A DNA stretch of 64,000 nucleotides from Oikopleura dioica (lineage: Eukaryota > Animalia > Chordata): positions 2,666,001 to 2,730,000 of the forward strand of contig OU015568.1 in NCBI GenBank assembly GCA_907165135.1, written 5' to 3'. Positions 40,951-63,723 of this stretch are shown here, piece after piece. The notes below the pieces were generated by a model that saw only the letters and a list, made by a program, of their open reading frames with translations, had not been told where the DNA came from and ran no database searches. Within the stretch, counting starts at the first letter, position 1. Every line of letters begins with the position of its first letter. Made by a program: the position numbers and the translations under genes.

Positions 40951-41776
40951 GAGACATCAAAAATGAAAAGCACGGAAGCTGCTTAGAAATGGTATCGCAC
41001 CGCTGGTCCACGAGATGAGCTCCGAAAAATCAAGCCCGATCAGTGGCAGATTCAGCTTTGGAAAGCTCAGAAATGATGATCAATGAAAATCCAACATAAT
41101 TAATAATATAGCTTGCCTTTTTTATCCTGCAAATAAAAATCGTTCTGTCTTATTTACAAAAAAATATAACCGGCGTCTATTCATATGAAAAAGACCTCCG
41201 TCTTCTCCGGCAGACTATTGACTTCCTATTGAAAACCTCCATCAACCTCTTTTCAGGTCAGCTCGCGGGCGTAATCCCTTTCATTCCATCGATTTCAAAA
41301 AGAAAAACTAATTTCCCGTGATCCTTATCGCTCATCTCGAGTGCTGTGGCACTCCTCTTTTGTAAACTTTTCGCTTCTGCGCAAAATTAAAAATTTCGTA
41401 AAACAGCGTGAAACGGGTACAAAACCGCGAAGAGTAAATTTGGTAGAGAAAGTATTTGGATTTATTACGAATCGAGAGAGGAAAAAAGCGAGAGAAATTT
41501 ATTGCCTGATCGTCAGGATTTATTGTGATTCCTACTAAAGAACGTAAAACTGAGAGATCCCGAGGTATGTTTGAATTTTTTCTCAGTTAAATTTTTGGTT
41601 GAAAAAAATCTATTTTTTTTTTGTTTCTAGCCCGAATTGACAAAATTTTGTTGCTATTCTGATCTATGTGTTTGTCCAATTTTAGACCATTAAGATTTCC
41701 GCGTTTGCCGGGTTGCCCAATAAGATTTCAGAAAAAAATCTTCGAAAAAACAAAAGTAAAGTTTTTTTTCAGAAAA

Positions 41777-42710
41777 ATGCGTCTTTATCTTGCCTTCTTA
41801 TCACTCTGCTCCTCCACTGAAATCAACGAAGACATCTATAAACGCCTCGATATCCTCGAAAACTACCAAAAACTTCTCATCTCGAACATTCGTTTTCAAC
41901 GCGCGCGCATCAACATTTTAGAAACAAACATGAAGAGCCTTCAAGAAGACAACAAACAACTTGCTAAGCAGATTTTGTATTTTGTCGACGACTATGATCG
42001 AGAGTACGACTATGCTTTTTCCGGCTCTGGAGATGGCGCTTATTACCCGAATGCTTGGGAAATGAGAGCTGCTCTTGTCGACCGTGTCAGGTGAAGAAAA
42101 ACCACGGACCGTGGTCCACGGTTAACCGCGATAAAGAGCGATCATTTTAGAGATAAGCGCCAAAACTCCCTTCCAGAAGAAAACTTTTTTGATATGGAAA
42201 TCGAAGAAATCAAAGACGAGCTGAAAAGCTGGAAACATATGAAGTTCGATTTCTTGTCTCAAATTCGAACCCTAAGTGACAATTTTTCCTCCCTTGAATC
42301 GAAGATCAAACAGGTAAAGAAAGAAGAAAATGATAAATGGTTCATTTTCAGTTTGAAATCAACGAGAAGGACTTCTATGATCTAGAAGAACGACATAATT
42401 CTGTGGAGAGGTTTTTGATCAATGCTCATAAGAATAAAGACCTTCAAGGTCCTCCAGGAAAGAGTTTAAATTTAATAAATGGTGAATTTCTCCGTTAAAA
42501 CTTTGTAACTCGAATAAAGGTCCCCCTGGAATTCAAGGGCAAAAAGGAGAGCTTGGTCCAGTCCGACTTGTTGCTGGCCCGGTTGGTCCTCCTGGCGAGC
42601 CAGGAAGACGAGGCGAGCCTGGATTCAAAGGAGAACCCGGAAGAACAGGTTATTTGAGGGGATTGAATGGCAAAAAAGGCGAAAAAGGAGAAAATTGCGA
42701 CTGTCGCTAA
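41777..42710 (+). CDS. Secreted coiled-coil protein with a short C-terminal collagen (Gly-X-Y) domain
   Basis: Signal [13 protein letters not shown], heptads, FSGSGDG, then [11 protein letters not shown]...[13 protein letters not shown]. Confidence 0.8.
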
Positions 42711-43404
42711 TTATTTTCATTCCTTCTGACTCAGAAGGGTTCAAACTTTCACTGTTACTTTCAAAATTTTATGAATAAAAATAAGCTCGAAGTGGTCTAA
42801 AAAAATACCTGATAAGGCATTATTTATCACGTGTCAAAAAATGAGTGATCCCTGGCATGACGGGATTTCTTTGTAATGTGACAGAGTGCGGCAATAAACG
42901 CCTTCAAAATATCTTGCAGGTTCAATGCTTTGGCCAAAACGCAAGCACTTACAGAGAGAGCACTTTTTTTGGTCATTTGCCGATCTGCTTGTGCATTTTT
43001 TGTTTAGACCAAAAGAGATACAGTCAGCTTTTTAGGTGTAAACAAAGGCTCAGGCATGTTGGGAAATCGGCAAAGTCGACTTCAAATTCAGGATATTTTT
43101 AGATAAAATGAACGGTATTTCATCTTCTTAATTAAATTCTACCCTTTGTTATCCTTCTATTGACTCATCAATCAGCAGGAAGCCAGAAGTCTGACAAGTG
43201 TGGTGTAAATAAAACGGCTTTGCATTTTTAACAATTGAAATTTGCGGGCTCTTTCGCTTTCGAGGAGGAGCACTGGGCGGCACCAAGCTGCTCCGCCAAA
43301 TCACCAAAAACAACAAAAATCAAACAACACCGTCATAACCTCAGTTCACGTTGTTGAGATATACAACCAAAAAAATATTTTTTTTCTTGAAAAAATAGAG
43401 AAAA

Positions 43405-44537
43405 ATGAGAGTTTTCGGCCTTTTACAAATCGCTTCTTTTGTAAAAGCGAGCAATATGACTTGGACAGGATCACTTGAAAACTTCGACTTCGACCTGCTC
43501 TTGGCCGAATCTGACAGCCCCATCGCGAAGGAACTCCTCTCCCTTTCCCCACTCAACGGAGAAGAAGTAAAGATCGACTCAAGAGGATACTTTGACACGG
43601 AAGCGCAGCGCGCTGAAAACCGTAAGCGCAAGCTCAAGTCGATTCTCGAAGTCGTCATGTTCTTGCAAGCTGACAGGAGCGCATTCACGCTTGAGAAGTA
43701 CTTACAGTACGGTTGCTACTGCTTCCCGCAGAGGGATGCTCAACTTTTTGTCGGAAGAGGAAATCCAGTTGATGAGGTGGATAAAGTTTGCAAAGCGTTT
43801 CAGACTTGCTACAGGTAAAGACCACAACAGGGATTGCTGCTTCCTTGAATATATATTTATTTTGGTTATCCTCGATTGAGTATTTGCTATAAAGAGCAAT
43901 AATTTGGTGATGTACTAGAAGGTGGTTATTTTAATTTAAAGATGCGTCGGAATTGATTACGGACAAGAAGATTGTATCAATAGTTTGGGATACGAATTTG
44001 AAGGGAAAGAGAATAAGAAGACTGGAGAGAGAACTCTTCATTGCAAAGGTAAATTCAAGTATTCATGAAAAAAATGAAACTACATCTTTTCTATTCAATT
44101 TCATTTCTTTATCATTTATTGTTTATTTGATATAAGAATAAATTTGTTGAATCAATAATTTTTAAAATTAAGACGCGAAAAGGAGCGAAGAATCAAAATG
44201 TTCCAGCGCGCAATGCGAATGCGATAAGGCCCTCGGTTTGTTGAGATTTGATCGTCATATCTTTAACAATCAATTTTGTTTAGCGGAGGGGCTCGCTCAG
44301 ATGGAGATTATGTGGAATCCTAACAACAGCGCGATGTATGGCGGGTTCATGTTTGAAACGAGCTGTCAGAGGGTGGAAAGATCAGTGACTGAGCGAGAGC
44401 CAGTTGATGTTAGATGCTGCGGCTACTATCCAAAAGTAAGATCTCGGGAGTATATTTTTTTATTATTGAACTTGTTTCTCAATACAGTGAAGAGAATGAT
44501 TATGAACCAAAATAATTGTAGATATAAAGTCGATTGA
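43405..44537 (+). CDS. Secreted PLA2-like (inactive) protein; 3' end uncertain
   Basis: Signal MRVFGLLQIASFVKA, YLQYGCYCFP..GRGNPVDEVDKVCKAFQTCYR, later CCGYYP. Confidence 0.78.
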
Positions 44538-45490
44538 TTTTTGAATTGTTCTTTTTTGCAAAAGACACGATGCTCCAGACGGAAAGAATGATCCCTGAAA
44601 ATAATTTTCTCCCCTAATTCTCATCAGCTGAACTTACCAAAAAGAGGCCAAAAAATTGAGTGAGCCATGTCCGAAGTCTTGATTATTCGATGCATAGTTA
44701 CTTCCTGAGGGTTTTTTGTGCTCTGGAAACATGAGAAGCTGTTGCCCTTTTCCATCGTTATCAAAAAATTCGAATCAGAAATTTTTTGAGCTAAGTAACT
44801 GATTTGATAATTTCCTGAAGGCCAAATGTTTCGTTGAATCTCTCAGTCGCGTTGTTCAAAATGTCCGTATTGCAAGTGCACTGCGGGGGATGATAAGAGC
44901 ACGGCAGGAGATCAGTAACGAACGAGTATTCGTTTTGGTGAAGGAGCTTTTTAACGATTTCATTTTTTTGCCGTTTACGTGATTCGGATTTATGAAAATG
45001 AAAACGTTCATAAGCTGTTTTGTCTCCGTAATTCGGATTTGTTGAGACGAAAATTTCTAAGCAGTTCATTTTTGGAGTGCATCCTCGATCGCTCAAATTT
45101 GTGACTGGGCACATGATCTTTCCATTGTAAATTGAATCGATAACTGTGCAATTGGTTTCCTAAAAGATGCTGATTTCGCGATTCTACAGATTAAATTTAC
45201 CTGCAAATGTCTTGAGTGAAGACCAGGAACAATTGTCTTGATCGTAAAGACCAGCGAAACGCAGGAAAAGATCAATAATAGCACCGATCCGGCTTTAATT
45301 CTCCGTTCATAAAAGAAAAAAAAATTCTCTTACCAAGAATAAATTGATTTTTATCCGTCAAGGATTTCGACTTTACCGTCACACCTGGAACTTTTGGGTC
45401 ATTAGGTTTTGATGCTCTTTTCCCTGACTCATCCTCTAGGCTTTTTTGAGTGGCAAGATTGTTTTTTCTGTTCAGTCCCCGTTTTCTCAT
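44500..45490 (-). CDS. KCNMB: BK-channel beta-subunit-like (KCNMB/CaKB family) two-TM protein
   Basis: TM1 after TDKNQFILA, ETNCTVI, CLEIFV, CSYHPPQC, FSCF, HSIFWP and TM2; these match, in order, KCNMB motifs EDRAILLG, EE.QCT, CLQV.V, CSYIPKC, FSCY, HSLFWP. Confidence 0.78.
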
Positions 45491-46387
45491 TTTTATCAAA
45501 TTATCCTTGGCCGTAAATGAGCGGCATAAAATTAAAATCGATCCTCTTAATCCATCATAAAATCAGATTATTCGTTTATATTGCCACTTTCCTTGGCCGC
45601 CGGATGCTAAATTTTCTCACTTTTTCTTGAGCCCAAGAAAAAAATGCCATTTTTTCATTCAGATTGAATTAAGAAAAATCAGCTCATTTTCTCTCGGTAA
45701 AATGGAAATAATAATAATTTACCAGGCTCGTAAAACACTTGTTAACTTACTTTGCCTGAGGAAGAATGATGATAAAAACCAGCTTGTTGCGCTCGTTTTT
45801 TCTAGCAGACTTTTCAATCAAATTCGAAGCGTATTTGAAAAGTACCTTTTCCACTTTGATGGACGGAATTAAGCCTCCTACGAAAGCTGAATTAATCATT
45901 AATAACAGCTTGGCATAAAACGAGAGGAAGTACTGTTTCATCTGATCAGATTTTCGCACGGATTTTCTATTCGACGAATATTTTTTATTTTTGGCGATTT
46001 GACACGCGTTGTTTGAGCAGAATTTATCATTTGGTGCATTCTAAAATTCGTCAAAAATATTTAATATGCCAAAAATTTCTGTTAAAATCATTTTTCTCTC
46101 TCTGAATGCTCACCTTCCTCCGCTCATTTTTTAAACGATATTCGATCAATAAGAAATTCCATCTTTTTATCATAATTAATTTTCGTTCTAGCGCTCCCCA
46201 TACGCGTACCGATCGAAAAATGGCCAACGAAACTGCTGCGGAGAAAAAACATACGACCCAAATGTTCTTGAATGCTGCCCTGGTGACAAACTCCAATCTC
46301 TTGGAACCTGTATTTACTGAAGAAAATAATCGTCTCCTCTATTCACTGTACATATTTTTATTGATAAATTTTATATAAAAAGCGGTT

Positions 46388-47498
46388 TTATGAAATTTCA
46401 TATTGAAGCAGTTGCAAATATTCTTTACATAGAGCGTCGACTATAAACTTTTCCTCTTCGTTGATTTTCTCTTTCCAAGAAGAAATGATGGCTGATGAAT
46501 TCCTCGAAGTCCCATAAGCTCCGCCTATTTAAAATTCAGAAGAAAAAAGCTGAAGATTTCTTACCTGAAGACGACTTCGTATTTTTTTCGATCCAGGCAT
46601 TTAAATTTTCCGGAAAGTCCCATTGAAGAAAATCGTAAATGTTTTTTGAATATAAAAATGGGTTTTCCGCTAACTCCTCAAATTTCAATTGATGAAGTTT
46701 GTTTTGAAGCTGGGGATTTTCGTCGAAAAATTTCTTTTCCTTGCTTTTTTCGTTGCAATAAGTGCTCATTTTCTTATAATATTGCTGATCACGCAGTTTC
46801 CCGAGCTTTTTTTGGCTAAGAAAAACAGGTCTTGCGTCTCTAAAAATTATTTGAGAAGATAAACGCTGAAAATCTTAACCTGTAGTAAATGAACACCCTT
46901 AAATCAACATTTCTTTCATCCGCAACACTCAGTAAAACATCGATATCTGCAGGTTTTATCGTTTTTATCACTCGTTTCTTTTGATGACAAAGTTCTGCCG
47001 CTTCCGTCCAGTTCCATCTCCTACATCTACTTCTTTTTGATGATGCGGTCTCGTCGCAAATTTTGTAGTTGTTGAGCTGACGACTCTTTTTGGTAAAAGG
47101 AAGATATGGTTTTGACTTGGTGAAGTTGCATTCGAAGAGGTCAAGAATGTAGTTTGCCCATTTTTCTTGAATTTTCGGGTTCATGTATCCCCTTTTTGCG
47201 AGATGTTCATGATCGGGCTCGAAAAGCTTAGGACATTCATAATAAATAATTTGTAACAACACGAGCTTACATATAAAACATCTTCGTTTTCATTGAAGAT
47301 TTCTCCAAAAAACGACGAGCCAGTTCTATATCCTGTCAAAAGAAGAACATTTTCTGCCGGCGGAAGTTGCTTTGGAATGATTTCTTCTGATTTGAGACTG
47401 TTTTCTCTATCATCAGAAGCTCTCGATAAACCATAAAACATCGTTATTAAAAAAAGAACCACAAAGAAAAATGTGAATTGATTTCCTTTCATCATCAT
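46388..47498 (-). CDS. Carbohydrate (6-O-type, CHST1-7-like) sulfotransferase, intact
   Basis: Type II TM anchor, TGYRTGSSFFG, LFEPDH, VIKTI, FEELAENP, GAYGTSRNS. Confidence 0.88.
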
Positions 47499-48742
47499 TC
47501 GGACAAGTTAGAAACTGCCAATTCTTGTTTTTTCTTCTTATCTCTTAGTTATTAAATGAGTCTTGAAAGATCAATAAAAGGGGGGCTCAAATATAACAGG
47601 CAAACTTTTCCCGGGGACCACAATTTTAAAGGTTAATTATTATACATTAACTTAATGTGTCCAGGGAAGAATATTGAACCCGTTAGAATTGTGGCCCCTT
47701 TTTATGAAAATATCAGTTTCGAAAAGGATTTCGGCGTCTCTGAATTTTAAACAGAACCTAGCCAATGGCTAGAATCCTGTAAGTAATTCATGCTGACGGC
47801 AAGACTCAGCAAGTTGTAGCCGTGTAACGAAAATCACATCTGCCGCGGTAAAAAGGACCCGAAGCAAAACTCCTTTTCGGCCAAGATTTTCTGTTTCTCG
47901 TCTTTTTTTTTCTTCAACAAAGTTGTTTTTTCGATCTTTATTCTATTTCAGAGATAACTTTTCACGTAAGTATGGAAGGAATTTTTCAAGAATGATTTCT
48001 AAAATGCTGTATCTTCGGGTTTCTCGGTAGCTTAAAAATGAATAATTATTCAACATGATTATTTCTCTCGATTACCAGTAGCTAGGCGAACCTTCTTTCC
48101 ACCCTTTCTCGCTTTTTTATGCTTCTCGTGAGATTGTTTTTCGCCAAAGACTGAACAAATTTCTCAAGTGCAAAAAACTTACGCCACAAACCGAAATTCT
48201 TCTGGAGGCGGAATGACTCTAAAGGAATAATTTTCATTTTGTCGAAGGAAAAATGGTACCTTTGTCGTTCGAGAATTTCATCGACAAATTGACTTCGTAT
48301 TGATCCGACGGGTCGGTCGAAGACATGGAGGAAAGTGAGTCTTGGGGACGAAGAATCCTCCGGCAAGGCATGGGAGTGTCAACGTGAGAACGCTGGCTTC
48401 CTTGACCGAAGCTCCAGATCTCATCGAAGCGAGCTAAAATTCGGTTCAAATTGATATTCTCTAGAGAGAAAGCAACTTTTAAATTCAATTTACAGAATAT
48501 AAAAAAAAAATATATGAAAATATTTACGAACCTTGAATTCTCTCTTTCGTCCAAAAATCCATTTTTCTTCCCAACCATGTTCACCCTCCTCTTTTAATGG
48601 TTGCCGTAGCACGCGAAAAGTGCTCAGACGAGCATCAAAGAAGGGCTTATTCACTGTTCAAAGCTCACATGCAATCGACTTTGAAATAAGAGAGGAAGTT
48701 TAATCGAATAATTTATTAATAAATAAATGCTCGGAGGCAGTT

Positions 48743-49949
48743 TTAGGCAACTTGTTCCAAGTAAATAGGATCTCCAACACGAATTTCGCCTTCTTTTACG
48801 ATCACGTGATCTGTGCCAGCTAGAATTTGAGTTAGGACTTAATAGACTTTCGTTGATTACCTGGAATTTTGCAGAGCTTTCTTTCTGCTAAGAAAGGAAC
48901 ATCTCTTGGGTTGATCTTTCTGAAAGTCTTGAGCGTCTTGGTAGGCTCGTCTTCCTGGCAGACTGTAATTTCTTCCTTGTCAACTGTAATCAGGGGGCAT
49001 CGTAGGGACTCTCGGGCCATTGCAATTATACAATCGCCGATGTGGAGTCTTCCTATCCATTTGTCTTCCTCCCAAGGCTCGTTTTTCAGCGTCTGAAGAA
49101 GATTACGAACGTATAAAAAAGAGAGTCTAACTTTGACAATGATATTGGACCGGAAATTCCAGTGAGAAATCTTGTCTCTATTCGCAGGAAGCTTTTTGTT
49201 GACATCATCGACCGAGTCTTGCGAAATCAGCTGAATCGGATAGTGATTGCTGAAATTGTCCGTTTTCATGTACTCGATGCCTTTCAATCTCCAGTCGAGC
49301 GCTTTTCCGTTCTTTTCCGGAATCCAGTTTGTCTTGCTGACGTCCCGGCCTTCTGGATTCACTGTCAGTCTTGTTTCTTCACCAAGATACTCAGTGAACC
49401 ACTCGGCTGCCGCATCCCCGCCGTCGGTTGCTTCGATTTTGTCTCCGTAAAAGTCGATTGAAGCCGGTTTTCCGCAGTCGGAAAGATTGAAAACCAGCGG
49501 TTTCATATCTGGCGCGGTGAAAATGAACTTCTCGTTGTTTGCACCTTCTTTGACTTCAATAAGCTTTTTCGAGCTTCAACTTTAATTCAACTTCAAACGA
49601 GAAAGATTTAGCTTTCGCTCTTTCCTTGAGCCGCAAGTTTTGAATGGCACTTGTTTTGACTCCATTCAACTTCCTCGTGGCGAAGAATCGATCGATCAAA
49701 TTTCCCGACTTCAATCCGAATCCGGTGACCATCGCTTTTGTCAGCGGGATTCCTCGGCATGTTTTAAGCGGAAAAATCACCAACTCTTCGACGTAACCGA
49801 CGAGCTTTTTCGATTGGACTTGTATTTCCGGCTCTCTTCAAAAAAATTAAGTTTCGAAAAATTTCGTTCAGTTACTTTGTCAGAATTTTATAAGCAATGA
49901 AGCTTGATACACCGGCGAGAATCGCGGAATCTGCAGCTGGAAGCTTCAT
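48743..49949 (-). CDS. MTARC: MOSC-domain protein, mitochondrial amidoxime-reducing component (mARC)-like
   Basis: N-terminal anchor, VGYVEELVIFPLKTCRG, GLKSGNLIDRFF, FRSNIIV, EDKW, RCPLITVD (Moco Cys), GEIRVGDPIY. Confidence 0.9.
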
Positions 49950-50242
49950 GGTTGAAAGTTCTCTAAGTCAGTTTTCCTGCTGAAAAAGCGAACAATGCTT
50001 GTTCTCATTCAATATTTGCCCAGTGCACTGCCTCCGAGGGATCGACCTTTGTGTCGATTTGAACTGATTAATCTTTTTTATCACTTTTAGTCATAATAAT
50101 GAGCTCTAGAAACAAATGAAATGATGTTGCCAAAGATCTGGGTTAGGGTTTGAATGAGTTTCCGAGCCAAAATACTGAGCTGTAATTTATATTTATATTT
50201 AGTGTTTTACTTATTTATTTTACTTCAAGCGCAATTCGTTAG

Positions 50243-50554
50243 AATGAATCCGCAATAACATGCGGAACTGTGCCTTGTCAAAACTTCGGCGAATGCTTTG
50301 GCTCCTTAATTCCGAATCTAGAAGAATCTTATGGTGGTTATTCATTTTGTCGATGCGGAGATGTGTTTTACGGAGAATTCTGCGAGAAGACGCCCTGTAC
50401 AAAGAAGCCTTGTTTAAATGGAGGAAAATGCAGTTTTCAATACATAAAAAACTGTACAGATGATCCTTTTCAATTTTGCTGGACCCATGCCTCTGATTTT
50501 AAATGCTCTTGTCCTCGAAATTTTGCCGGTAAAACTTGCCAGATCAAAAAGTGA
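50243..50554 (+). CDS. Exon encoding two EGF-like domains (small secreted protein; 5' part unresolved)
   Basis: CGTVPCQNFGEC...CRCGDVFYGEFC and CTKKPCLNGGKC...CSCPRNFAGKTC. Confidence 0.65.
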   Translation, partial: NESAITCGTVPCQNFGECFGSLIPNLEESYGGYSFCRCGDVFYGEFCEKTPCTKKPCLNGGKCSFQYIKNCTDDPFQFCWTHASDFKCSCPRNFAGKTCQIKK

Positions 50555-50756
50555 AAAGAAGGGTAAAACTTTATTTACAGCAAGAATAAACTTTTAAAAG
50601 GATAGAAGGATTGCTTGAGTGAATTGTTGGGACGGAAAGAGGAGCTCATCAGTAGTAACATAACCTTCGCCCTAAATTTACAAACATTTTGAAAAACGAC
50701 CAAACCTGTTACGGAAGCGACGATTTTCGGTGAATTTTAGATGTCTTTTTCTTTGT

Positions 50757-51558
50757 TCACTTTTTGCTCTTTGGAAAATGGCGGAGACGATAGAATTTGA
50801 GGAACAAATCTTGGTTGAACGAAATCATCAAGAAAGGGGTAGTGTTCACTTCAAGCAGAGCCACTAGCCTTCGACAAGAGCCATGGAAATGAATCGGTCG
50901 CCTTCGAGGATTTTGATTTCGGAAATGTTCGACTGTCACGGATCTAACTGCACATTGTTCAACATTGTTGATACAATACTTGATCATTATCCGGCGGTTT
51001 GTTGAACCATCTTAGTTCGTCCGGTTTAAAAAAAGTTTGACCGTTTCCTGAATCGCATTTTTGTTCTTCTTTCTCCTGAAAGAATTGTTAAATAAGTGAG
51101 CTAAAAATCAGAGAAGTGCTTTGACCACAGCTTTAAAGGGCAAGAGGGTAGGGGCTCAAACCACATAAAACCTTCCGGTTCCGAGATTGTTGCTTTGTTG
51201 AAGTTCATTCCTTTTTTATTGCATAATTGCTTTGTTTCAGACCATTAAGATTTTAAGGAGAAAAAGTGGTCGAAAAATACGGAAAAGATAAAAACGTGGG
51301 GCGAATTATTTCGTCATAATTGGAAGGCTCAGCCGCAAAAATTCCCGTTTTCGGGTCACGTGGCATATTTTCGGTCGCCGCCACGGACCAGCTAGCTAAA
51401 GTTGTGGTTACTTAGCTGTGAGTCTACGCGGAAACAAGCGAACGCCGGGAAAGGAAAGGGGAATTACCTGAAGTTGAGCTCGTCGCGGAGTTTAAGGAGG
51501 ACCATCGTCGTGACGCTCCAAATCGAGTTTTTCGGTTGTGTTGGAGGCGCTTGCCATT
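50757..51558 (-). CDS. Possible spliced gene of unknown function
   Basis: First exon MASASNTTEKLDLERHDDGLLKLRDELNF with a GT donor; downstream exons not resolved. Confidence 0.25.
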
Positions 51559-51730
51559 TGAATCGCGATTCTAAATCGCACCGTCAATTTTAACCTTTCG
51601 GGCATTTTTTCGACGCTAGTTTTTTAAACTGCTTTTACGACAAAGCAATTTCCAATGCTTTTAAATTGATCTTAATCGGTCTCCTTTTCCTTTCAAAATT
51701 TTATCAATTTTTTGACTTTTTTTTTCTTAA

Positions 51731-52529
51731 CCCGTTAAGGGGGTGGTGGTCGAGAAAATTTTTTCGGACTTTTTAAAATTTTGATATTATTTTTAGATTC
51801 CTTGATAAAAAAGGAGCATTTTTGGTCTCTAGCTTTTTTTGATTGGACCAACTTTATTTAAGAAAATTTTCGATTTTATACTTTGAAATCGCCATTTTGG
51901 GGAGTTTTGAAACGCGTTTTTCTCACTAAAACCGATTCAAAATTGTTTTTTTCATTGCGAATTTATGTTTCTTGATCATATCTCATTTATAAAAATCTAA
52001 AAAATTACGATTATTGTTATGTTTACAAAAATTTCATTGAAAAATGAGTAAAATGACGATTTTTTCAGAAAACAACATATTTTCATTCAATTACTATTTT
52101 CTTTTCTAACTGGCTGAACTTTGTAAAACTAAGCCGCCCACACGCATAAGGGTTTAAACTTTCCTCTCGGTAAGTTTTATTTCGAAAAAAATATTAAGGG
52201 GATCGAGTTTTTTAGGTCAAGAGATGGGTCTACTTTGAAGGAATTTTTCACCATTTTTTCGAAAAATTATTTTTTTCAAACATAGCCGCCCGCATAAATT
52301 GGACCCTTTTTAACTTATTTTCAATCAGAGAAAAAAATATTTTTTTGAAAAAATTGGAGTTTTTTAGGTTGAAAAAAGTCTTAGTCTCGACCACCACCCC
52401 CTTAACAGGGTGGTCGATTTCACCTACGCTTTTGCATGTCTGCGATTGAGTGAAATCATGAATCCGGGCATCCGATTGGCTACTCATTTCCACGCGTGGA
52501 GATTAAATCTCCACGGGCCTGTTAACGGG
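51731..52529. mobile_element. piggyBac-type MITE (~132 bp; TIR CCCGTTAACAGG, TTAA TSD) interrupted by a Kolobok-like MITE
   Basis: TTAA|CCCG-TTAA at the left and CCTGTTAACGGG|TTAA at the right; removing the 51739-52401 insertion plus one TTAA restores the left TIR. Confidence 0.75.
51739..52401. mobile_element. Kolobok-like MITE, 663 bp, TTAA TSD
   Basis: Perfect TIR GGGGGTGGTGGTCGAGA / TCTCGACCACCACCCCC, flanked by TTAA on both sides. Confidence 0.85.
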
Positions 52530-52533
52530 TTAA

Positions 52534-52928
52534 GGGGGTAGAACTAGGATTTTCGAAAATAGGCAATTCTAGACCGGCGCTCAAAGCCAGGCAAGCTAAG
52601 ATATTCAAATTCTCTCTTCAGCTGAAGATAGAGCAAACCTAGATCTAACAACATTTTTCTTAAAAAAATTTTTCGTCAACAAATTTTGGCGGTAGAGAGC
52701 GATACACCAACCTATCTCATCGAAAATCGCCATTTTAGCCTATTCGCGTCCTCAAATTTCTCGAGTCACGTGGCTAGGCATTTTTTTTAAATTTCATTTT
52801 TTGATAGTTTAACGCTTTTTCTAGCAACATCTTTGAGGAAATTTCGTTAACATAAGTAAAAACAGGTTTTTCTTATTTAAAGATGCTCTCAAAAGTCACT
52901 TATTTTCGAAAAATCTAGTTCTACCCCC
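52534..52928. mobile_element. Kolobok-like MITE, 395 bp, TTAA TSD
   Basis: 28-bp TIR GGGGGTAGAACTAG(G/A)..TTTCGAAAATA with TTAA at 52530 and 52929. Confidence 0.85.
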
Positions 52929-53560
52929 TTAAATCATATTTTTTATCCGACTTTTTTGTCATCCTCTGAAAGGTTGCTTTGGTGTATCAAGGCATTTGAA
53001 TAGCTAATTAAATCTAAAATTTACGAAAAATACAAAAACTGCATATACAAGCAATTATCTCAATTAGCCCGTTTCTTGAGCAAATATTGAATCTATCAAT
53101 AAAAAACACAGCTTTTCTTTTTTATTCTCTATTTATCCAAAAGCAAGTCTACAATCCGTTGGACCCTTTTTACGAGCAAAATAACTTTGAATCTAATAAA
53201 GGCTGATAAGGCCCTAGAATTTTCAATTGAAGGCTTATCAAAAAATGCCCCCACACGTTTTAATCGACATTCATTTTATTGAAACATTCGATTTCAATTT
53301 TTCAATTGACCACTTATCATGAGTTCGATAAGATATTACCTGAGCTGGCGGTTGAAGTTGTGGAAGAGGTGCTGAGCGAGTCTGGCGGCGGAAAGTTGAC
53401 GGGAAGCGTGCTTCCGAACGGATCGTAGGAAGTCCGCCGGGCCGCTAACAAAATAGAATATATTAGAAGAAATATTAATCATTAGATTGTTTTCACGATG
53501 ATTTCTAATTTTTCCATTTAGAAACTTTCTGTTTCTGTTTTTTGAAATAAAGGGGACTGG

Positions 53561-53654
53561 CTGGGCTTGGCAACCTGTGTTGAAAACCTGAGTCAGGGTC
53601 TAGAATATCTTTCAGACCCTGACTCAGGTTTTCCACAGAGTTTTTCGAGCCAAG
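53561..53654. mobile_element. Short palindromic copy of the hAT-like AP-1 MITE
   Basis: CTGGGCTTGGCAACC...AAAACCTGAGTCAGGGTCT / AGACCCTGACTCAGGTTTT; degenerate right terminus. Confidence 0.65.
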
Positions 53655-54031
53655 AGCATTGTAAATATTAAATGCCCGTGTGTTTTAGAGTTCGATTTGT
53701 ATAATAGGTTAAGTGTTGTCTATTTAGCGCGTTAAATGGCCATTTAGATGGTGGATCTCTTAGCTGAACGTTGAAAATGTCAAGGCATGCATGTTTCCTG
53801 AGCTGGCCCCCTCTTTTGGGAATAATGGTTAGAAATTCTAATTCGGATTTGAAATGGAATCACTCCTCGGTGCACTTGAACTCTAATCCGCTTAGAGTAA
53901 CACTTTCAACCAAACAGGGAAGGGATTACTGCCAGACCGCAGCCACAAGAAGACGTGGATTCGTTAATTTCAGCGAATTCAGCGTCAACCAAATATTTTA
54001 AAAAATTTAACAAGAAGTTTTTACCTAGAGT

Positions 54032-54197
54032 TGGCAACCTGTGTCGAAAACCTGAGTCAGGTTCTGAAAAGCTTCAATAAAAAGCCGCGTTGCGGCTTTT
54101 TGAAATCGAAGCCGATTTGCGGCTTTATTAAAAGCCGCTTTGCGGCTTTAAATTGAGGCTCTTCAAAACCTGACTCAGGTTTTTATTTAGGTTGCCA
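54032..54197. mobile_element. Complete copy of the hAT-like AP-1 MITE with three internal GC palindromes
   Basis: TGGCAACCT...AGGTTGCCA ends, inverted AAAACCTGAGTCAGG/CCTGACTCAGGTTTT, and three AAGCCG(C/A)-N3-GCGGCTT units. Confidence 0.7.
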
Positions 54198-55628
54198 GAT
54201 TTATCAAATAACGGGAGCCTCCTGTATTGAGATTTGTTAACACAATAACCCCTTGCAGCAGATTTAGGGCAGTTGTTTCGTAAAATATGCGTTTTGCATA
54301 TTCGACTACGACACACGCTGTCAGAAAACGAGGGGGAGTAAAGGTTTTAAAATGCAGCCCAAAAATGTTTCGAAGAGGATTGGCGGCAGCTGAAGCCGCT
54401 TTGCAACTTTTTCTTTGCAATTCGGCAGCGTTTTTCCAGCTTTTATGATAATGAGTCATTTTTCGAAAAATAAAAGAAAAAGAGTCCTTCTTTTATTTTT
54501 CGTTATTTTTTGCTGAGGTTGAAAAATTCAGAAGCAGAAGTTCTTTTAGGTCCAAAAATCCGTTCTAAGTCCGGCAGTGAAGTGTCCCGAGATAGTGTTT
54601 CTTTCTCTTCTTTCCGGTCGTTCATACTCTAAACGGTAATTTCCACGGGCTTCCCACCCTGATGTAACTATTATTTCGCTATTTATTGCAAAAGTAAGCT
54701 GCTAGTGCTAATGCAAACACCAACTTGCTGATTATAATAAACACATGTTCTGGGGCGGCACTTTTGCATAGAGAGGCTCACACGTTTTTTCAAGTAAATG
54801 TGTTTGGAAAACATAAGTTTCACGCTCTCAATGCTCATTTGAATACAGTCAAGTATACAGTAGTCATTAAATTACATAAATTAGCGATTTTGAACTTTAA
54901 TACGGCTCTAGAATATTCCTTTCTGTCACTGAAAGAAATTTTCTTTACCTTATTATTTTACTCCTAAAGGGTCAATCATTAAATTCCCATGTCCAACAAG
55001 AATTATTGTCAAAGACAAACGGACAATGTTACGAATAAACGCCCCGAAAACTAAACATACAAGTAAACGAATATTTATGAAATAATCATCTGTCAAAAAG
55101 ACAAAAAGCTGAAAGCAATTACTGAAAAAACGGGAAAACGGGAAATGACACGATTGAAAAAGAAACATTTAAGAGTAGAAAATGATGAGTGTGATGAATA
55201 AAATTGAAGTGATATGAGTTTTTAGAACTTTGTTATCGAAAAGAGGGAGAAAAAAATCTGCGGGTAATTTTACGCTCAGTTATTGGGCACGTGTTCGCCC
55301 GAGTCGAGTGAGGAGTAAGGGCTCTTTGTAGTTTAGAAATTAATTTTTCGAGGAAAATTTCACAATGCACTCTTCATTCAGATTGCTCTTTGACTTCTAT
55401 TACATAAATGAATCATTTAAAATGATCAAAAATATTGAGATGATGAGGATATCAATCTTAAGCTCGGATTTATGATAGGAACCTTTTATTCTTTTTACTC
55501 ACACAATGAACATTTTCTTGGCAGTTTTTGAGTCGTATGCTTATATCCGTAATAATACACAACCTCCAAGAAAAATAGAGATTTATTGTTCTTAACCTAT
55601 TGAACTAGAAATAATACAGTTTTTATGG

Positions 55629-55995
55629 AATTTTTGGACATCAATTTTTTGGACATTTTTGCAATTTTAAGGGGTTTTCTTGGGACACTTTTCAAAAGTG
55701 CCTGTATCAAATTTTTGGACATTTTCTGCGCCAAAATTTTAAATTTCCCGTTTTTTGCCAGATATGGCGTTTTTTCTTATCGAAAATCTTACTTTTTTTT
55801 GAAAATGATGAGATTTAAGCTTGATCTAGTACCCCAAGAACATTTTTTGTCTTTAGAAGAAGGATGAAACAGAGGATGATGGAGATTTTCCTCAAAAAAA
55901 AAATTTTTAAACGTTTTGGGTGGGACATTTTTTCTGACAGCATGCATCAAATTTTTGGACATTTTCGCGAAAATCTTGGGACAAAAAATGTCCAA
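55629..55995. repeat. Dispersed direct repeats of TTTTTGGACATTTT (about 5 copies, one inverted)
   Basis: Two similar blocks (GGGACA..TTT..ATCAAATTTTTGGACATTTT) at ~55682 and ~55922, plus AAAATGTCCAAAA at ~55985. Confidence 0.5.
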
Positions 55996-57646
55996 AAGTT
56001 CCATAATTTACTGTATCCAGGAAAAGGCAAAAGGTCTATTTCTTTTGATTTTCCTCGAAATCTTAAATCTACAATCTCACCTAAAACATCAGGTCGAGTA
56101 AATCGTCGTCTCCTATTCTCTACCATTTTCAAACTCAAAGATAATTCACCAAAAAGCACAAGAATCAGTCGGTTACTTTTTCAAAAAAAGCGCGATCGTC
56201 GCCGGCCTCCGCTCACGCCGCGCGGTTTGGAGGGCGCCACAGCGTTTTTTCTCAATCATCAAGAGCGGTGTTATGCGTTCTTATTTTTGTAATTAATCAT
56301 TTTCAAAGCATCGTTAATTTTTTTATTAATCAAATCTGCATATTCTTTTGATCTGTCGTTTTGCCTGCTAGATTTTTTTCTTTTTTTTTTGTTTAATTCA
56401 ATCTAATTCGATTGTATTTAATTGTTTATTGACAAAATAATTTGGTTCTCCATAACCACTTAGCTGTAAACTGCTTACCCCTTGCAACGAGCACTAGAGC
56501 TCCTTATCCATCAAAAATTCTATTTGAACAAAAACACACGAAACTTGTTGACCTTTTCCTCAAAACTCTGAGTTTTTTCTTCCTTGATCGAAAAAGGAAA
56601 AAAAAGATGATGACGGCGAGGAGACAAATTAATAAATCCTTATCATTCAATTTGCGAGGCAGTTATAACTGAAGATAAGTCACGCTAACAAGAGGTTAAA
56701 ATCCCCATCGATAGCAAAAAAGAAGGCATTCAGGAAACTTAAATTTGAGAAATTTGCTATCAAAAGAGTCATATTAAAGCTGACTGAGGCTTGAAAGTTC
56801 ATTCATTCGTATTTTAAAATACTCGTCAGTAATCGGATGTATTCGGTCAGAAAAAAAGTTTTCTTTATTGTCAAATCTCACTGCGGGGCCGGAGCGAAAG
56901 AGCAACAACCTTCCTCCTTTTTGAACAATTTCGAGCCGTTGAGCGTCTTTGCTCCTTGAAGTGGCTTGATTCTTAATTAACAGTGCTTACATCTCCTAAT
57001 CCGATAATACCGTTGTTATGCTTCATAACTTATAAGTTGCAATTTCTGCGCATAAAAAGAACTTTCTACCGAAGAAAAGAAGAAAAAGAGTTTTTCTTTT
57101 TTGTCAAAAAATTATCGCCGCAGATGCATGACAAATTAACGGGGGCACAATTTTCACGGAAAATCGTAAAAATGGCTACGTTTTAAAATTGAAATTGCGT
57201 CACACGTTAGACAGTCTACCTTTCTAGCATTCTAGAGCTCGATTTTAAAAAGGGGTTCGACAGATTATTCTTTCATTTTTGAACTTATGAAAGATTTTTG
57301 ATAATAGCGGTTCGAAAGTCACATATTTCCAATAATTCCACCCCTAGATCTGATTGAAAATCATGTTTTTGGAAATCCACGTGAACTGAAAAAATGTGTC
57401 CCATGGCCGGTGGGTCAGCAGCCGCCCCAAACAACACTAAACAAGAAGCTAAACAACAATACTCTTGGGCACCACGTTGACTATTTTCAAGCGAATTAAA
57501 TATATAAACACGTTTTTTGCGTGTAACTACGGCTGAGAATTTTCTAACCGAGGATTAGTCTCTGTGGGGGCAGCAAATTATCAGAAACGTTTTTGGCCCA
57601 TTTCTTCAACGGGAAAAATAGACTTACACGGCTTCTACTCGTTTAA

Positions 57647-57979
57647 GGACCCCCCGTCAGCTTTTTTCGAAAAATCAAATTTCTGAATTTTAAAATTTTG
57701 ACCCCGGAAATGGATTCTTCAGGTCAAAAAACGATTTTGAGGCTTCATTTTTGGGGGTCTATCTCGACTCTAACACCTTCAAAATCGCATTTGAAAATTG
57801 GACTTTTCGTCGAAAATTGACAAATTTGCCTCAATTTTGGCATAAAAATTGATTTTTCTTAGTCAAATATTCCTCTTGTCATGTTTTTGAAGCAAGTTTA
57901 ACCCTCGGACGCATTAAGAACCAAAAATATGGTGTTTTAAAAATTTCCATTTTTCGAAGGAAAAAGCTGACGGGGGTCC
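57647..57979. mobile_element. Kolobok-like MITE, 333 bp, TTAA TSD
   Basis: TIR GGACCCCC(C)GTCAGCTTTTT / AAAAAGCTGACGGGGGTCC, with TTAA at 57643 and 57980. Confidence 0.85.
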
Positions 57980-58445
57980 TTAATAGCTGTTTACGCAACA
58001 AATGTTACATCTTTCATTCCCACTATCAAAATTCTAGAAACGGCTCTGACAGATTTAAGATCTAAGAAAGATCTACTTATAGACCCAACATGGTAAACTC
58101 CAGCATTTACAGGTTCCGAGTTATTCAAGCGGAAAGTTGGTATAATCGAAGGTAGTACCCTAAAATAAAACAGTCCTCTAGTTAGCGATGCTAATTGTTT
58201 TCTCTCAATAAAATTAAGAGCACTCTTAGAGTATCAGCAGGTGTACCCTCAACACAATCGTGGCTGTCGAAATATGAACGCGTAAAAGCATCACTTATCA
58301 CAAGAAGAGAGCATCGGTGGAGAGAAAGAACGCGCGCTTTGCGCCACAAAATTGCCACCTCGGTGGTTCTCGTTGGAAAGGTCTGTGGGAGAAGGTCCTC
58401 TCCTCTTAGGCATAGTAACTGGCTCGAATGGCGGACAAAGTCCTC

Positions 58446-58517
58446 GGAGAAGTAGTGCAGTGGTAGCACACCGGTTCATGAACACGGAGGTCCCTGGTTC
58501 GACCCCAGGCTTCTTCA
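58446..58517 (+). ncRNA. tRNA-like Pol III gene inside LTR1 (defective anticodon arm)
   Basis: 7-bp acceptor GGAGAAG/CTTCTTC, D stem GTGC/GCAC, T stem CCTGG/CCAGG with TTCGACC loop, A and B boxes, TTTT at 58522. Confidence 0.85.
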
Positions 58518-58816
58518 ATACTTTTCACTCGCCTTTGCCTGATCCTACAAACTGGTGAAGACAGTGGGTTGTCTAGGTAGCCAAAACAAACCCTAAGCTG
58601 AGATTGACAAAGGTTCACTCAGTAGCTCAGGAGAAGCTGAAGGTTGGGAGGGTTGGTAGGCTTGTAACGGTTGGGGACCGTGGCACCAGACAAAGAACCA
58701 AAACCCAAGGCGGCATATGTAAGACGAGTTGTTAGAGCAGTTACTAGGGGGAGTTGTGGGAGAAGGTCCTCTCCTCTTAGGCATAGTAACTGGCTCGAAT
58801 GGCGGACAAAGTCCCC

Positions 58817-58888
58817 GGAGAAGTAGTGCAGTGGTAGCACACCGGTTCATGAACACGGAGGTCCCTGGTTCGACCCCAGGCTTCTTCA
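58817..58888 (+). ncRNA. tRNA-like Pol III gene inside LTR2
   Basis: Identical to the copy at 58446-58517. Confidence 0.85.
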
Positions 58889-59175
58889 ATACTTTTCACT
58901 CGCCTTTGCCTGATCCTACAAACTGGTGAAGATAGTGGGTTGTCTAGGTAGCCAAAAACAAACCCTAAGCTGAGATTGACAAAGGTTCACTCAGTAGCTC
59001 AGGAGAAGCTGAAGGTTGGGAGGGTTGGTAGGCTTGTAACGGTTGGGGACCGTGGCACCAGACAAAGAACCAAAACCCAAGGCGGAGTTGTTAGAGCAGT
59101 TACTAGGGGGAGTTGTGGGAGAAGGTCCTCTCCTCTTAGGCATAGTAACTGGCTCGAATGGCGGACAAAGTCCCC

Positions 59176-59247
59176 GGAGAAGTAGTGCAGTGGTAGCACA
59201 CCGGTTCATGAACACGGAGGTCCCTGGTTCGACCCCAGGCTTCTTCA
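59176..59247 (+). ncRNA. tRNA-like Pol III gene inside LTR3
   Basis: Identical to the copy at 58446-58517. Confidence 0.85.
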
Positions 59248-59546
59248 ATACTTTTCACTCGCCTTTGCCTGATCCTACAAACTGGTGAAGACAGTGGGTT
59301 GTCTAGGTAGCCAAAACAAACCCTAAGCTGAGATTGACAAAGGTTCACTCAGTAGCTCAGGAGAAGCTGAAGGTTGGGAGGGTTGGTAGGCTTGTAACGG
59401 TTGGGGACCGTGGCACCAGACAAAGAACCAAAACCCAAGGCGGCATATGTAAGACGAGTTGTTAGAGCAGTTACTAGGGGGAGTTGTGGGAGAAGGTCCT
59501 CTCCTCTTAGGCATAGTAACTGGCTCGAATGGCGGACAAAGTCCCC

Positions 59547-59618
59547 GGAGAAGTAGTGCAGTGGTAGCACACCGGTTCATGAACACGGAGGTCCCTGGTT
59601 CGACCCCAGGCTTCTTCA
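59547..59618 (+). ncRNA. tRNA-like Pol III gene inside LTR4
   Basis: Identical to the copy at 58446-58517. Confidence 0.85.
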
Positions 59619-60408
59619 ATACTTTTCACTCGCCTTTGCCTGATCCTACAGGTCGTTGATGAGTTTGAGATGCAATCAGCGTTAGGTCAGGTGACAATCT
59701 GGAAGCGACGCGGCGAAATTATAGCTCGAACGCGTCGAAAATCACGCAATTCCAAATAATAGTAGTTTTCTCTTTCAGTTGAACCTGCAAAAATTTTTCG
59801 AATTCTCAAAGGCAACATTTGTTTTCTTGAAAAATTTGGTAATTAACGGATTTTCGGCTTCTTATTGGCCGTTGGGTCAAGCGCATTTTTTGACGAATAA
59901 GAAGCCTGTTTTAGCTTAATCAGCCAATAAGAAGCGAGAGACCTGTTTCAAAAAAAGTTTTTCATGAAATAAAAAGTTTGTTTTTACCGAAAAGCAGTTT
60001 TTTCTTGATGTTTTGAATCAAAGAAAAACTGGGTTTGCGGTCTTGTCACGATTTTTAACAAAATGGTGAATCAACTTTTACTGCGTTTTCAACGTGGTTT
60101 TATTTGATTTTGTAAGAGCTACTTGCTAAGGGAAATGGGGTCAACATGACGGAAAGACAAGATATCGTGGTTGATGGGGGAGACGTTTAGATAACTGCGA
60201 TACAAGCGCTTCCATGTTGGGAGTGGGCTTATGCGGCATCACCGCTGCCCAATTACCGTAATTTAGTTTTGATAAATCAGAAACGGTTTATGTTATTTGC
60301 AAACTTTCATCTTCTATCTGGTTTTTAGCGACTTTTGCAAAGTGGAGTTAACAGAAAAACAGATTTGCCGGTCTGCGTCGGCATATTTATCGAAATGAGG
60401 CTCTACGG

Positions 60409-61080: not shown

Positions 61081-63447
61081 TCAGGAAAAGTTTGCTTGCG
61101 CAACTGAACTTTCAACGTGCATATCGATGATGATGCCAATCATCGAAATCAGGATAACCGATGACAGAATAAAAGCCCAGAAATGCGAGCAGATCTTTCC
61201 GTAGAAAATCCAAGCTTCTTTGAAAGCATCTTTATCTTGATCTGAAAACACTTTGGCTTATTGCAATCAAGGAGGAAAATATACCTTTCACATCTTCGCC
61301 ATTGACAAGACTTGTGATGACAGTAGGAATCGTGTAGACTCCATGCTTGAAGACCTGGAAAAATTTCGCGCATCGAAGAGCGAACTTTGCTCTCCACCGG
61401 TCGAATGTGAAGACACGGTCGGAAGTTTTATCGTGGCACCATAAATTCATCGCTATAATAAAACATGTTGTCATAAAGCTCATAATCATAAAGTTCTCAA
61501 GAAATTTCTTACTTATGATAATATGAGCGAAGACGCTTCCGATGGCGATGATCAAAAACATGATCAAAAGACGAGGAGCGATGCTGATATCCTTGAAAAT
61601 CGGAACAGAACTAGTTCATGGCTCAGACTCTGCTCTTTAACATCAGACGCGCAAATTCTAGAGCCGTTCCTGGAAAGAACGTCCAAATAAACAATCATGG
61701 TCAAGAGCATTGTGACTTGGAATCCAAGTGTTTCACCAGAAGAAACCGGCATCCAGATACCGAGAACGACCAGAATGCACATACAAACAATAGGCAGGAA
61801 GAGCGTTAGCTCATAAAAAGCGATGTTACGAGCTACGGCAAAAGTAACTTCCTATGGTTTTATCATTTTTCTTTTCTTAGCATAGAATTCCGTATTATTA
61901 TTAATACGGTAATACGGTATGATCTAACCATTCCTTGAACTCTAGAATATTTGTTCCCATCATTTCCAGTTATCGCCACATCAGTGAATTTATACCCAAG
62001 AAAATTCCACGCTGGATTGTCGTCGTAAAAAACATTTTGAAGAACAGTCATATCGGTCTGACTGTAATCTAACGACTTCTCCCCATCTTTCGGATCGAAC
62101 TGGACGCCATTTTTGAACATCCATTTTGTGACTTCAAGAGAAAGTTTACTCATCGGCATTCCCGGTGTTGACAGATCGATGGAGCAAACTTGAACATCAA
62201 AAGGGTAAAGGGCGGGGTCCATCGAGCAAGAAGTGCTGAGTCGAAGCTTTCGAGACATTTTTACTTCTCCGCGGTAGTTAACTATGCAGCCGTATTCTTG
62301 GATCTAAACAATTTCTTCACTAGGTGCCTTTTTGAAATCGAACTTACCTTAGCAAAGTTACCCCAGGTGTCCAGGTTGACAATCTCAATTGGGGGAGTCC
62401 AGATTAGATTTGGGTCGACTTCGATCTTTTGTGTGTCATTGTAATACATTCGATCCCATTTCAGCCTATCGTCTTAAAAAAGATGTTGGTAAAGATAGTG
62501 TATCTTCAATAAGGACCAAAGTTGGGTTTAGAGTAAACAGATACCTGTCCATGAAGAAAATACGACAATGGTCGTATCCATGGCGCTATCTGCAAGTTCC
62601 AACGCATTCAAGCTCACCAGTTCTACTTCGACATTAACTTTCATCGCGTCGGAAGTCATAACAGTTAGAACATCGTCAAGGAGATCAAGATCCTCAGCAT
62701 AAGCGAGACGTTGCTCCGGATTTTCTCCGGTTCTTGGGGACTTGGTCGACGTTGCCGACGAAGTTGACGATTGAGTTGTTGAACCATAATCTTCATATTC
62801 AACGGGTCCGTTCTTTGGATCGCAGGCGCCATTATACTCAACATTTTGACTTCCATAGTCAAAACCAGGGCTAGCGAATTGGTGCCACACTATCCGCAAT
62901 TACTTGGCTTAAGACTCCACTTATTAATTTTGATCTATTTTGATCAAATAAAGCGGTTGGAGACAAACCGCACCAACTCGCTCAAACTACTTTTTGGGGG
63001 CCCAACCATTGTTTTTTTGTAAGTACGGCCAGCGGGGCACCATTTTGCCAGCCCTGGGCAGGACCGTAGAAGATGTTCATAAGCCAGCCAACACAGTCGT
63101 TCTCTCCATTTTTCTTCCAGGTCCAGCCTTCCGACGCTTCCCATTCGCAGTTGAATGCATAATTTGCAATTCGCGATTCTTCGTAATCTGATGACCAAGT
63201 TTGTTTCATCTTCTTAAACCATTTTTTACAAATTGCTGGAGCATCAAATTTTTCATGGGATGGATCTAACCATGTGAACCTGAAATAATACTCATTATAA
63301 TTTTCCTGCGTCCAGTTGTACGTACTCTGGGTTGAGAGGGCTGACACTCTTCATGTATCCCGCATCGTACAAAAGTTTTTTGGCCAAAACCTCCTCAACG
63401 GATTTCGCATTTGCGGAGATGAGAAAATACAAAAGAAGTTCTCTCAT
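61081..63447 (-). CDS. Divergent cation-type Cys-loop ligand-gated ion channel subunit (nAChR non-alpha/5-HT3-like)
   Basis: Signal peptide, WT|DDRLKW, IWTPPIEIVN, Cys loop CSMDPALYPFDVQVC, M1-M2 WMPVSSGETLGFQVTMLL, M3 and M4; no vicinal loop-C cysteines. Confidence 0.9.
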
Positions 63448-63723
63448 AATTTTGTTTCTCTGTTCTGCAAAGCTGCTGATACCTCGGTGGCTTTGCCCGC
63501 TGAAGACATAAAATTTTACTGACAATTTTTACGAGTAGGTCTCCAAGAAGTCGAGTTACGGCAAAAGTTTTATGTGATTACATTTCAAAAACAAATTAAA
63601 CCTTCGTTCGCCGACAACATAAAACTGCTCCCAATAAAAAATTTCTGCTTCGGATTGCATTTTTTTTTATAACTATATTATTTTAGTCTATAATTGTACA
63701 TATAAATATCACAGAGGCAAACG

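Follow-up and report, generated by a model that had tools for sequence, protein, structure and literature searches.

The stretch of Oikopleura dioica DNA analysed here, which is called the window throughout, comprises 64,000 nucleotides (nt) of contig OU015568.1, at about 2,666,001-2,730,000, from the OKI2018_I69 (Okinawa) assembly GCA_907165135.1, where it belongs to chromosome PAR. An array of direct repeats was found at window positions 58384-59650, corresponding approximately to 2,724,384-2,725,650 of the contig. The array lies between genes, with the nearest annotated gene on one side stopping at window position 56126, and its G+C content was observed to be 51.7% against 39.1% for the window. 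Tandem Repeats Finder reports it as a single array with a period of 371 nt, 3.4 copies, 96% matches and a score of 2420. By exact-string and blastn comparison it resolves into four long terminal repeats (LTRs) of 166 bp that are separated by three internal regions (I1, I2 and I3 of 205, 193 and 205 nt respectively), giving the layout LTR-I-LTR-I-LTR-I-LTR and a monomer length of 166+205+166 = 537 bp. From its sequence organization this array is most probably a Helenus-type terminal-repeat retrotransposon in miniature (TRIM), also termed TRIMp3, which is a protein-less LTR retrotransposon with a gene unit for RNA polymerase III (Pol III), derived from a transfer RNA (tRNA), in each LTR. Coordinates of all the features are collected in Table 1.

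The LTRs begin with TGTGGGA and finish with TCCTACA, so that they carry TG..CA termini and a terminal inverted repeat matching at six of seven positions. They are almost identical, where LTR1 differs from LTR2-4 at one position only (58444, which is T in LTR1 and C in the other three). A primer-binding site (PBS), TGGTGAAGACAGTGGG, beginning with TGG, starts 3 nt past each of LTR1-3 and an 8-nt polypurine tract (PPT), AGGGGGAG, stops 1 nt short of each of LTR2-4. I1 and I3 are identical whereas I2 is a variant with a C>T change within the PBS (giving TGGTGAAGATAGTGGG), one extra A and a 13-nt deletion. The tetranucleotide GGTC abuts the outer edges of LTR1 and LTR4 and forms a single target-site duplication (TSD) for the entire array. 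Inside the array the bases adjoining the LTRs are ..GAGT and AACT.., and because these differ, the edges of the array are unambiguous and GGTC lies outside the repeat unit. With the edges fixed in this way, four matching bases would be expected by chance in 1/256 of cases.

The same arrangement could in principle belong to tRNA pseudogenes in an ordinary tandem cluster, or to a satellite, produced by local segmental duplication with no retrotransposition. This explanation draws on the single known locus and on the existence of tandem arrays with tRNA-like sequences, such as those of contig L009 described below, which have a unit of 300 nt and a tRNA-Lys-like sequence. However, the limits of the array coincide with LTR edges, so that the extra partial unit is exactly one 166-bp LTR, the LTR ends are TG..CA with the 6/7 inverted repeat, TGG occurs 3 nt past every LTR and the purine tract 1 nt before every LTR, and the 4-bp direct repeat flanks the array from outside the unit. 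A combination of LTR edges, PBS, PPT and TSD is not predicted by local duplication, and this origin is therefore regarded as most improbable.

The array has no coding capacity. All of its open reading frames (ORFs) were found to be 98 amino acids or shorter, most of them with a TTG or GTG start, and the two longest unique ones gave no Pfam match. The 98-residue ORF on the minus strand shared no words with any entry of a protein index of 5.8 billion clusters. When the 81-residue ORF on the plus strand was compared with 1.84 billion representative sequences, the only matches were P0006, a low-complexity protein, and P0005, which comes from an unrelated tRNA-Lys-like array. An original prediction, which had been made from the letters of the window without database searches, had described the four-LTR layout, the imperfect inverted repeat at the LTR ends, the spacing of PBS and PPT, the one GGTC duplication around the array, the lone LTR substitution and the absence of coding capacity, and each of these was recovered in the present analysis.

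The source of P0005 deserves a brief description. Positions 1603-4714 of L009 (European Nucleotide Archive ERZ25068633, contig ctg133587_1x_l) hold two adjoining tandem arrays in opposite orientation, whose 300-nt units are 99% identical and number 4.5 in one array and 5.8 in the other. A tRNA-Lys(CTT)-like sequence is present in every unit, and one of the arrays was read by the gene caller as a 594-residue 'protein'. These arrays may represent another tRNA-bearing TRIM, or a satellite derived from a short interspersed element (SINE), in some eukaryote.

The most distinctive part of each LTR is a 72-nt tRNA-like sequence, which was identified by ARAGORN once per LTR at LTR positions 63-134. 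With the Rfam tRNA model the LTR modules score 50.5 bits against a threshold of 29, and the four modules are the sole tRNA matches in the window. The acceptor stem (7 pairs, one of them G-T), the D stem (4 pairs) and the T arm (5 pairs, with the loop TTCGACC) are all fully paired. The A box reads TAGTGCAGTGG and the B box GGTTCGACCCC, both of which we take to agree with the Pol III consensus. In the anticodon stem only three of five pairs are standard, the loop TCATGAA has C in place of U33, and the label given by ARAGORN, 'His, anticodon ATG', does not correspond to any natural isoacceptor. The tRNA-like sequence is no working tRNA; given the defects of the anticodon arm, it is therefore read as a tRNA-derived promoter and processing module. 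The cloverleaf with intact A and B boxes that had been predicted thus stands as far as its length of 72 nt and its two boxes are concerned, while the anticodon stem and the missing U33 depart from it. A cluster of functional tRNA genes was rejected as an explanation for the array on the grounds of the three-of-five pairing, the C at position 33 and the unnatural His-ATG identity. As a practical consequence, the window contains four false 'tRNA-His-AUG' calls and such copies, genome-wide, would inflate a tRNA census. Inflated tRNA counts caused by such elements have been described in rust fungi (Kojima 2024, PMC10886601).

A run of TTTT begins 4 nt past the end of the tRNA-like sequence. It is the sole TTTT in the 371-nt unit, and the sole other run of three T occurs shortly downstream. 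In the other 339 nt of the unit TTT is absent compared with about 3 occurrences in shuffled sequences (P about 0.02 with dinucleotide and about 0.08 with mononucleotide shuffling). This layout of T-runs is consistent with a Pol III unit having its terminator in the LTR, as in the plant TRIM Cassandra. Depletion of TTTT itself was considered as evidence for Pol III and dropped, since a sequence of this size would lack TTTT by chance in 57% of cases.

A further tRNA-like trace was noticed in the internal region at 58623-58688, with equivalents in units 2 and 3, where an A-box-like motif, TAGCTCAG, is followed 66 nt on by GGCACCA, which resembles the 3' end of a CCA-tailed tRNA. A second, decayed and retro-copied tRNA between these two motifs was considered and rejected, as no Rfam tRNA match was obtained there even at expectation values (E) up to 10.

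TRIMs whose LTRs hold a tRNA-derived sequence have been named Helenus, those with a 5S-derived promoter Ajax, and both together with Cassandra form the TRIMp3 group (Kojima 2024, PMC10886601). All the structural features that define Helenus were found in the array, namely short direct terminal repeats, no gag or pol, a tRNA-like sequence bearing both an A and a B box in each LTR, a PBS, a PPT and a 4-bp TSD, the last at one locus. As in most Helenus elements, the tRNA-like sequence has a defective anticodon arm and is unlikely to be a functional tRNA. In animals, Helenus elements make 4-bp duplications and have a PBS that is complementary to tRNA 3' ends and is common to Gypsy elements; the element described here likewise has no ORF, a PBS and PPT between its LTRs, a PBS of the 3'-end type and the 4-bp duplication that all animal Helenus share (PMC10886601). 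The 537-bp monomer falls within the length range of Helenus (311-1263 bp) and the tandem arrangement is matched by the arrays of zebrafish LTR-11_DR (PMC10886601).

The O. dioica element differs from the described Helenus elements in its host, which is a tunicate (Appendicularia), in being known from one locus, and in its PBS, which fits none of the primer types listed by Kojima. The recorded hosts are Ctenophora, Chordata (coelacanth, sturgeon, paddlefish and ostariophysan fishes), Mollusca, Brachiopoda, Nemertea and Arthropoda, and tunicates are absent from that host table (PMC10886601). Six k-mers of 9-15 nt from the LTR and PBS, and four of 11-12 nt from the tRNA-like part, were sought in the supplementary files of that study, including the consensus sequences of DataS1, and none was present, although such a search misses k-mers that are broken across lines. 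Their absence therefore points to a separate family inside the Helenus group and not to exclusion from the group. No paper that pairs Oikopleura with TRIM or Helenus was found in the literature searched. The element is thus apparently the first Helenus from a tunicate, and the suggestion of a possibly new tunicate family survives. The type itself was already described in 2024, so that the SINE/TRIM hybrid put forward in the original prediction is not a new kind of element (PMC10886601). This assignment would extend the range of Helenus/TRIMp3 to the tunicates, and to a genome that is among the most compact, and the poorest in transposons, of any animal.

Comparison with other known systems supports the same placement. 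At E up to 1, tRNA is the sole Rfam family that matches the array, with no 5S ribosomal RNA-derived sequence, the trait of Cassandra and Ajax, and no hammerhead ribozyme, the trait of retrozymes. Cassandra duplicates 5 bp of its target in plants, is built on a 5S module and has plant and fern hosts, whereas the module in the present array is tRNA-like. What the two share is a non-autonomous design with Pol III promoter and terminator inside the LTR, as well as LTR-internal-LTR tandem arrays that resemble a cluster of small-RNA genes (PMC7215508), and the comparison with Cassandra drawn in the original prediction is an apt one. The name Ajax, which had been given there to tRNA-derived TRIMs, belongs to a different element. 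Like the present element, Ajax is a TRIM of animals whose LTR holds a Pol III promoter, but it is nemertean, has a 5S-derived module, makes a 5-bp duplication and uses a tRNA-Leu PBS; tRNA-derived TRIMs are Helenus (PMC10886601). With the tRNA-derived SINEs (SINE2) the element has in common its short length, the lack of coding sequence and a tRNA-like head that contains both an A box and a B box. However, SINEs are without LTRs, PBS and PPT, end in an A-rich tail or one derived from a long interspersed element (LINE) and transpose through target-primed reverse transcription, none of which applies here. A tRNA-derived SINE was accordingly rejected, given the LTR-PBS-PPT layout and the lack of an A-rich tail at the end of the array. 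Tor, a Ty3/gypsy family of the same host, consists of LTR elements with 4- or 5-bp duplications but encodes gag, pol and often env and is transcribed by RNA polymerase II from its LTR (PMC4402516).

The first 18 nt of the PBS are laid out as the complement of a genuine tRNA 3' end, in which CCA is preceded by A73, a 7-nt acceptor strand, CCCAC from C61 and two more nucleotides. Residue C61 is invariant in tRNAs, and reverse transcriptase normally halts at tRNA position 58, where the PBS match would break. The T-stem strand CCCAC is also present in the tRNA-Leu and tRNA-Lys primers given by Kojima (PMC10886601). From the PBS, the 3' end of the host primer tRNA is predicted to read ..AACCCACTGTCTTCA.

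The start of the PBS also matches the element's own module. When CCA is added to the 3' end of the tRNA-like sequence and the reverse complement is taken, the result starts with TGGTGAAGA, which is exactly nt 1-9 of the PBS. Within the LTR-I-LTR monomer, the stablest duplex for the CCA-tailed tRNA-like 3' end was observed to form at the PBS (-19.6 kcal/mol, with the next site at -18.2). Past the generic TGG this self-complementarity covers 6 nt, for which we estimate a chance of about 2e-4 under uniform composition and about 1e-3 when the common A73 and C72 are allowed for. Such a match could suggest a self-priming TRIM, where the tRNA-like RNA made from the LTR would be trimmed and CCA-tailed and would then anneal to its own PBS, so that promoter and primer are united in one module. 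The exact 9-nt complementarity at the best pairing site of the monomer speaks for this scheme, as do the intact acceptor and T arms. RNase P, RNase Z and the CCA-adding enzyme require only these two arms, as for the mascRNA of MALAT1, and a precedent for self-priming exists in Tf1 of fission yeast. The length of 9 nt is also what was accepted for many Helenus elements, whose PBS-tRNA matches are often only 8-9 nt, e.g. TGGCGCCCA (PMC10886601). However, the pairing ends after 9 nt, and since the match to a primer recopied in each cycle would be expected to extend to about 18 nt, we consider self-priming unlikely. Moreover, nt 1-18 of the PBS look like the 3' end of another, genuine tRNA. The C>T change that unit 2 carries in its PBS leaves the pairing neither better nor worse. 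Kojima searched Helenus for a PBS complementary to the tRNA-like sequence of the same element and found none in any of the families (PMC10886601), which sets the present element apart; among a few hundred families, one chance 9-mer would be unsurprising and the match may be of that kind. If self-priming were functional, the element would be the first LTR element with its own tRNA-type primer gene.

Under the preferred Helenus-type reading, with a host tRNA as primer, a life cycle can be proposed from the layout of these parts. Transcription by Pol III would begin around LTR position 63, either at the tRNA-like sequence or shortly upstream of it. Part of the transcripts would end at TTTT (LTR positions 139-142) to give a small tRNA-like RNA, while those that run on as far as the next LTR's TTTT would give a genomic RNA, with U3 at about 1-62, R at about 63-142 and U5 at about 143-166. 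This RNA would be copied in trans by the reverse transcriptase of a Ty3/Gypsy-type (Tor) element, where a tRNA annealed at TGGTGAAGACAGTGGG would prime the first strand and the polypurine tract the second, and the resulting complementary DNA (cDNA) would be inserted by the Tor integrase through a 4-bp staggered cut. A Tor/Gypsy integrase as the mobiliser is plausible, since Tor makes 4- or 5-bp duplications in the same host (PMC4402516), and it is consistent with the 4-bp duplication of the array and with the Gypsy-like PBS of animal Helenus. Tor appears to be the only plausible source of the reverse transcriptase and integrase, and the element would then imply a recently active Tor-type partner that is able to mobilise such a TRIM. 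For Helenus in general, transcription by Pol III was left unproven (Kojima 2024, PMC10886601).

The array itself most likely arose after insertion by unequal LTR-LTR recombination, as in Cassandra, Wukong and zebrafish LTR-11_DR. Tandem arrays are known for Cassandra, whose LTRs contain both promoter and terminator for Pol III (PMC7215508). Alternatively, a multimeric cDNA, made from the read-through transcript of an older array, may have been integrated as such. The near-identity of the LTRs, from which a recent insertion had been predicted, is borne out by the comparison; as an argument for recency it is weak, because recombination within an array homogenises its repeats. Arrays of near-identical repeats that are bound by Pol III would be substrates for recombination, which is relevant to O. 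dioica as a species known for extreme genome scrambling.

Several observations weigh against the interpretation of the array as a mobile, Pol III-transcribed Helenus element. Only one locus is known from the searches of the window, of viral and metagenome contigs and of predicted proteins, which bears on whether the array belongs to a mobile multi-copy family. With blastn, the LTR and internal region matched the array and no second copy in the window, and an exact 21-mer from the tRNA-like region gave no match in viral contigs and none in metagenome contigs. The depletion of T-runs is weakly significant. Minimum-free-energy folds were no stabler than those of shuffled sequences (z = -0.73 for the tRNA-like sequence and z = +2.24 for the whole unit), so the cloverleaf is backed by the covariance-model score and not by folding energy. 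The TTTT lies merely 4 nt beyond the tRNA-like sequence and a full-length Pol III transcript therefore needs read-through. On the side of the primer, the metagenome was scanned for tRNA genes that have the 3' end expected from the PBS, and the seven matches returned are put down to chance because none of them is a tRNA. On the side of the autonomous partner, the 16-nt PBS matched 19 viral contigs, none of which has an LTR-like repeat upstream; these contigs fall into groups with near-identical flanks and look like a few unrelated contig families.

Two further points apply. Firstly, the LTRs are near-identical and yet three changes separate I2 from both I1 and I3, a pattern that a single simple unequal crossing-over does not yield, and therefore more than one recombination step is needed. 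Secondly, the copy number of the array derives from a single nanopore-based assembly. The element could be real while its unit count and the I2 variant arose as artefacts when a nanopore assembly was polished in a repeat. A median read length of 840 bp and polishing with Racon and Pilon are in keeping with such an artefact (PMC8008620), and the extra A of I2, which falls within an A run, is a typical nanopore error. However, neither the 13-nt deletion nor the C>T change resembles a typical homopolymer error, and with 221x coverage and reads of up to 166 kb over an array of 1.27 kb (PMC8008620) this explanation appears quite improbable.

Table 1. Features of the tandem TRIM array and its target-site duplication (window positions; tRNA-like, tRNA-like sequence)
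Feature	Position	Strand	Remarks
TSD, left copy, GGTC	58380..58383	+	Directly abuts LTR1, outside repeat unit
LTR1, 166 bp, TGTGGGA...TCCTACA	58384..58549	+	T at 58444
tRNA-like in LTR1 (LTR 63-134)	58446..58517	+	ARAGORN; Rfam 50.5 bits; A box 58453-58463, B box 58496-58506
TTTT in LTR1	58522..58525	+	Candidate Pol III terminator and R/U5 border; sole T4 run in 371-nt unit
Internal region I1, 205 nt	58550..58754	+	Non-coding
PBS of unit 1, TGGTGAAGACAGTGGG	58553..58568	+	3 nt after LTR1
PPT, AGGGGGAG	58746..58753	+	Stops 1 nt before LTR2
LTR2, 166 bp	58755..58920	+	
tRNA-like in LTR2	58817..58888	+	ARAGORN, Rfam
TTTT in LTR2	58893..58896	+	
Internal region I2, 193 nt	58921..59113	+	Variant: C>T in PBS, extra A, 13-nt deletion
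PBS of unit 2, TGGTGAAGATAGTGGG	58924..58939	+	
PPT before LTR3	59105..59112	+	
LTR3, 166 bp	59114..59279	+	
tRNA-like in LTR3	59176..59247	+	ARAGORN, Rfam
TTTT in LTR3	59252..59255	+	
Internal region I3, 205 nt	59280..59484	+	Identical to I1
PBS of unit 3	59283..59298	+	
PPT before LTR4	59476..59483	+	
LTR4, 166 bp	59485..59650	+	Last element of array
tRNA-like in LTR4	59547..59618	+	ARAGORN, Rfam
TTTT in LTR4	59623..59626	+	
TSD, right copy, GGTC	59651..59654	+	Directly abuts LTR4

The other flank of the array is occupied by exons of a Cys-loop ligand-gated ion-channel (receptor) gene on the minus strand (61232-63525), in which the ORF at 61863-62258 has a Neur_chan_LBD match and the Cys-loop motif. 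The 3' end of this gene points towards the array at a distance of about 1.6 kb. Elsewhere in the window, a gene with a MOSC domain (48832-49506, minus strand) has relatives at 75-78% identity, P0002 and P0003, on Joint Genome Institute (JGI) metagenome contigs of about 1.1 kb. Oikopleura-like lineages thus occur in marine metagenomes, yet the 21-mer of the TRIM is absent there. Another assembly of the locus was sought through both genes, where the MOSC gene, which matches a PAR gene model of OKI2018_I69, led to the window's own record only and an exact look-up of a Cys-loop receptor exon gave no match. Positions 2704743-2725506 of OU015568.1, retrieved for the MOSC gene, show 100% identity with window positions 40000-59506. 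In the OKI2018_I69 assembly, 44% of the repeats are unclassified (PMC8008620).

Two other repeat features were noticed on the side of the gene model at 50864-56126, which encodes 116 amino acids and whose span is unusually long for O. dioica. Within this model lies a 54-nt inverted repeat (54047-54183) that is 85% complementary with a 29-nt loop and could be a hairpin resembling a miniature inverted-repeat transposable element (MITE). In addition, a cluster of short direct repeats at 55616-55968, just inside or upstream of the same model, contains the motif CATCAAATTTTTGGACATTTTC three times together with a 62-nt pair of 76% identity.

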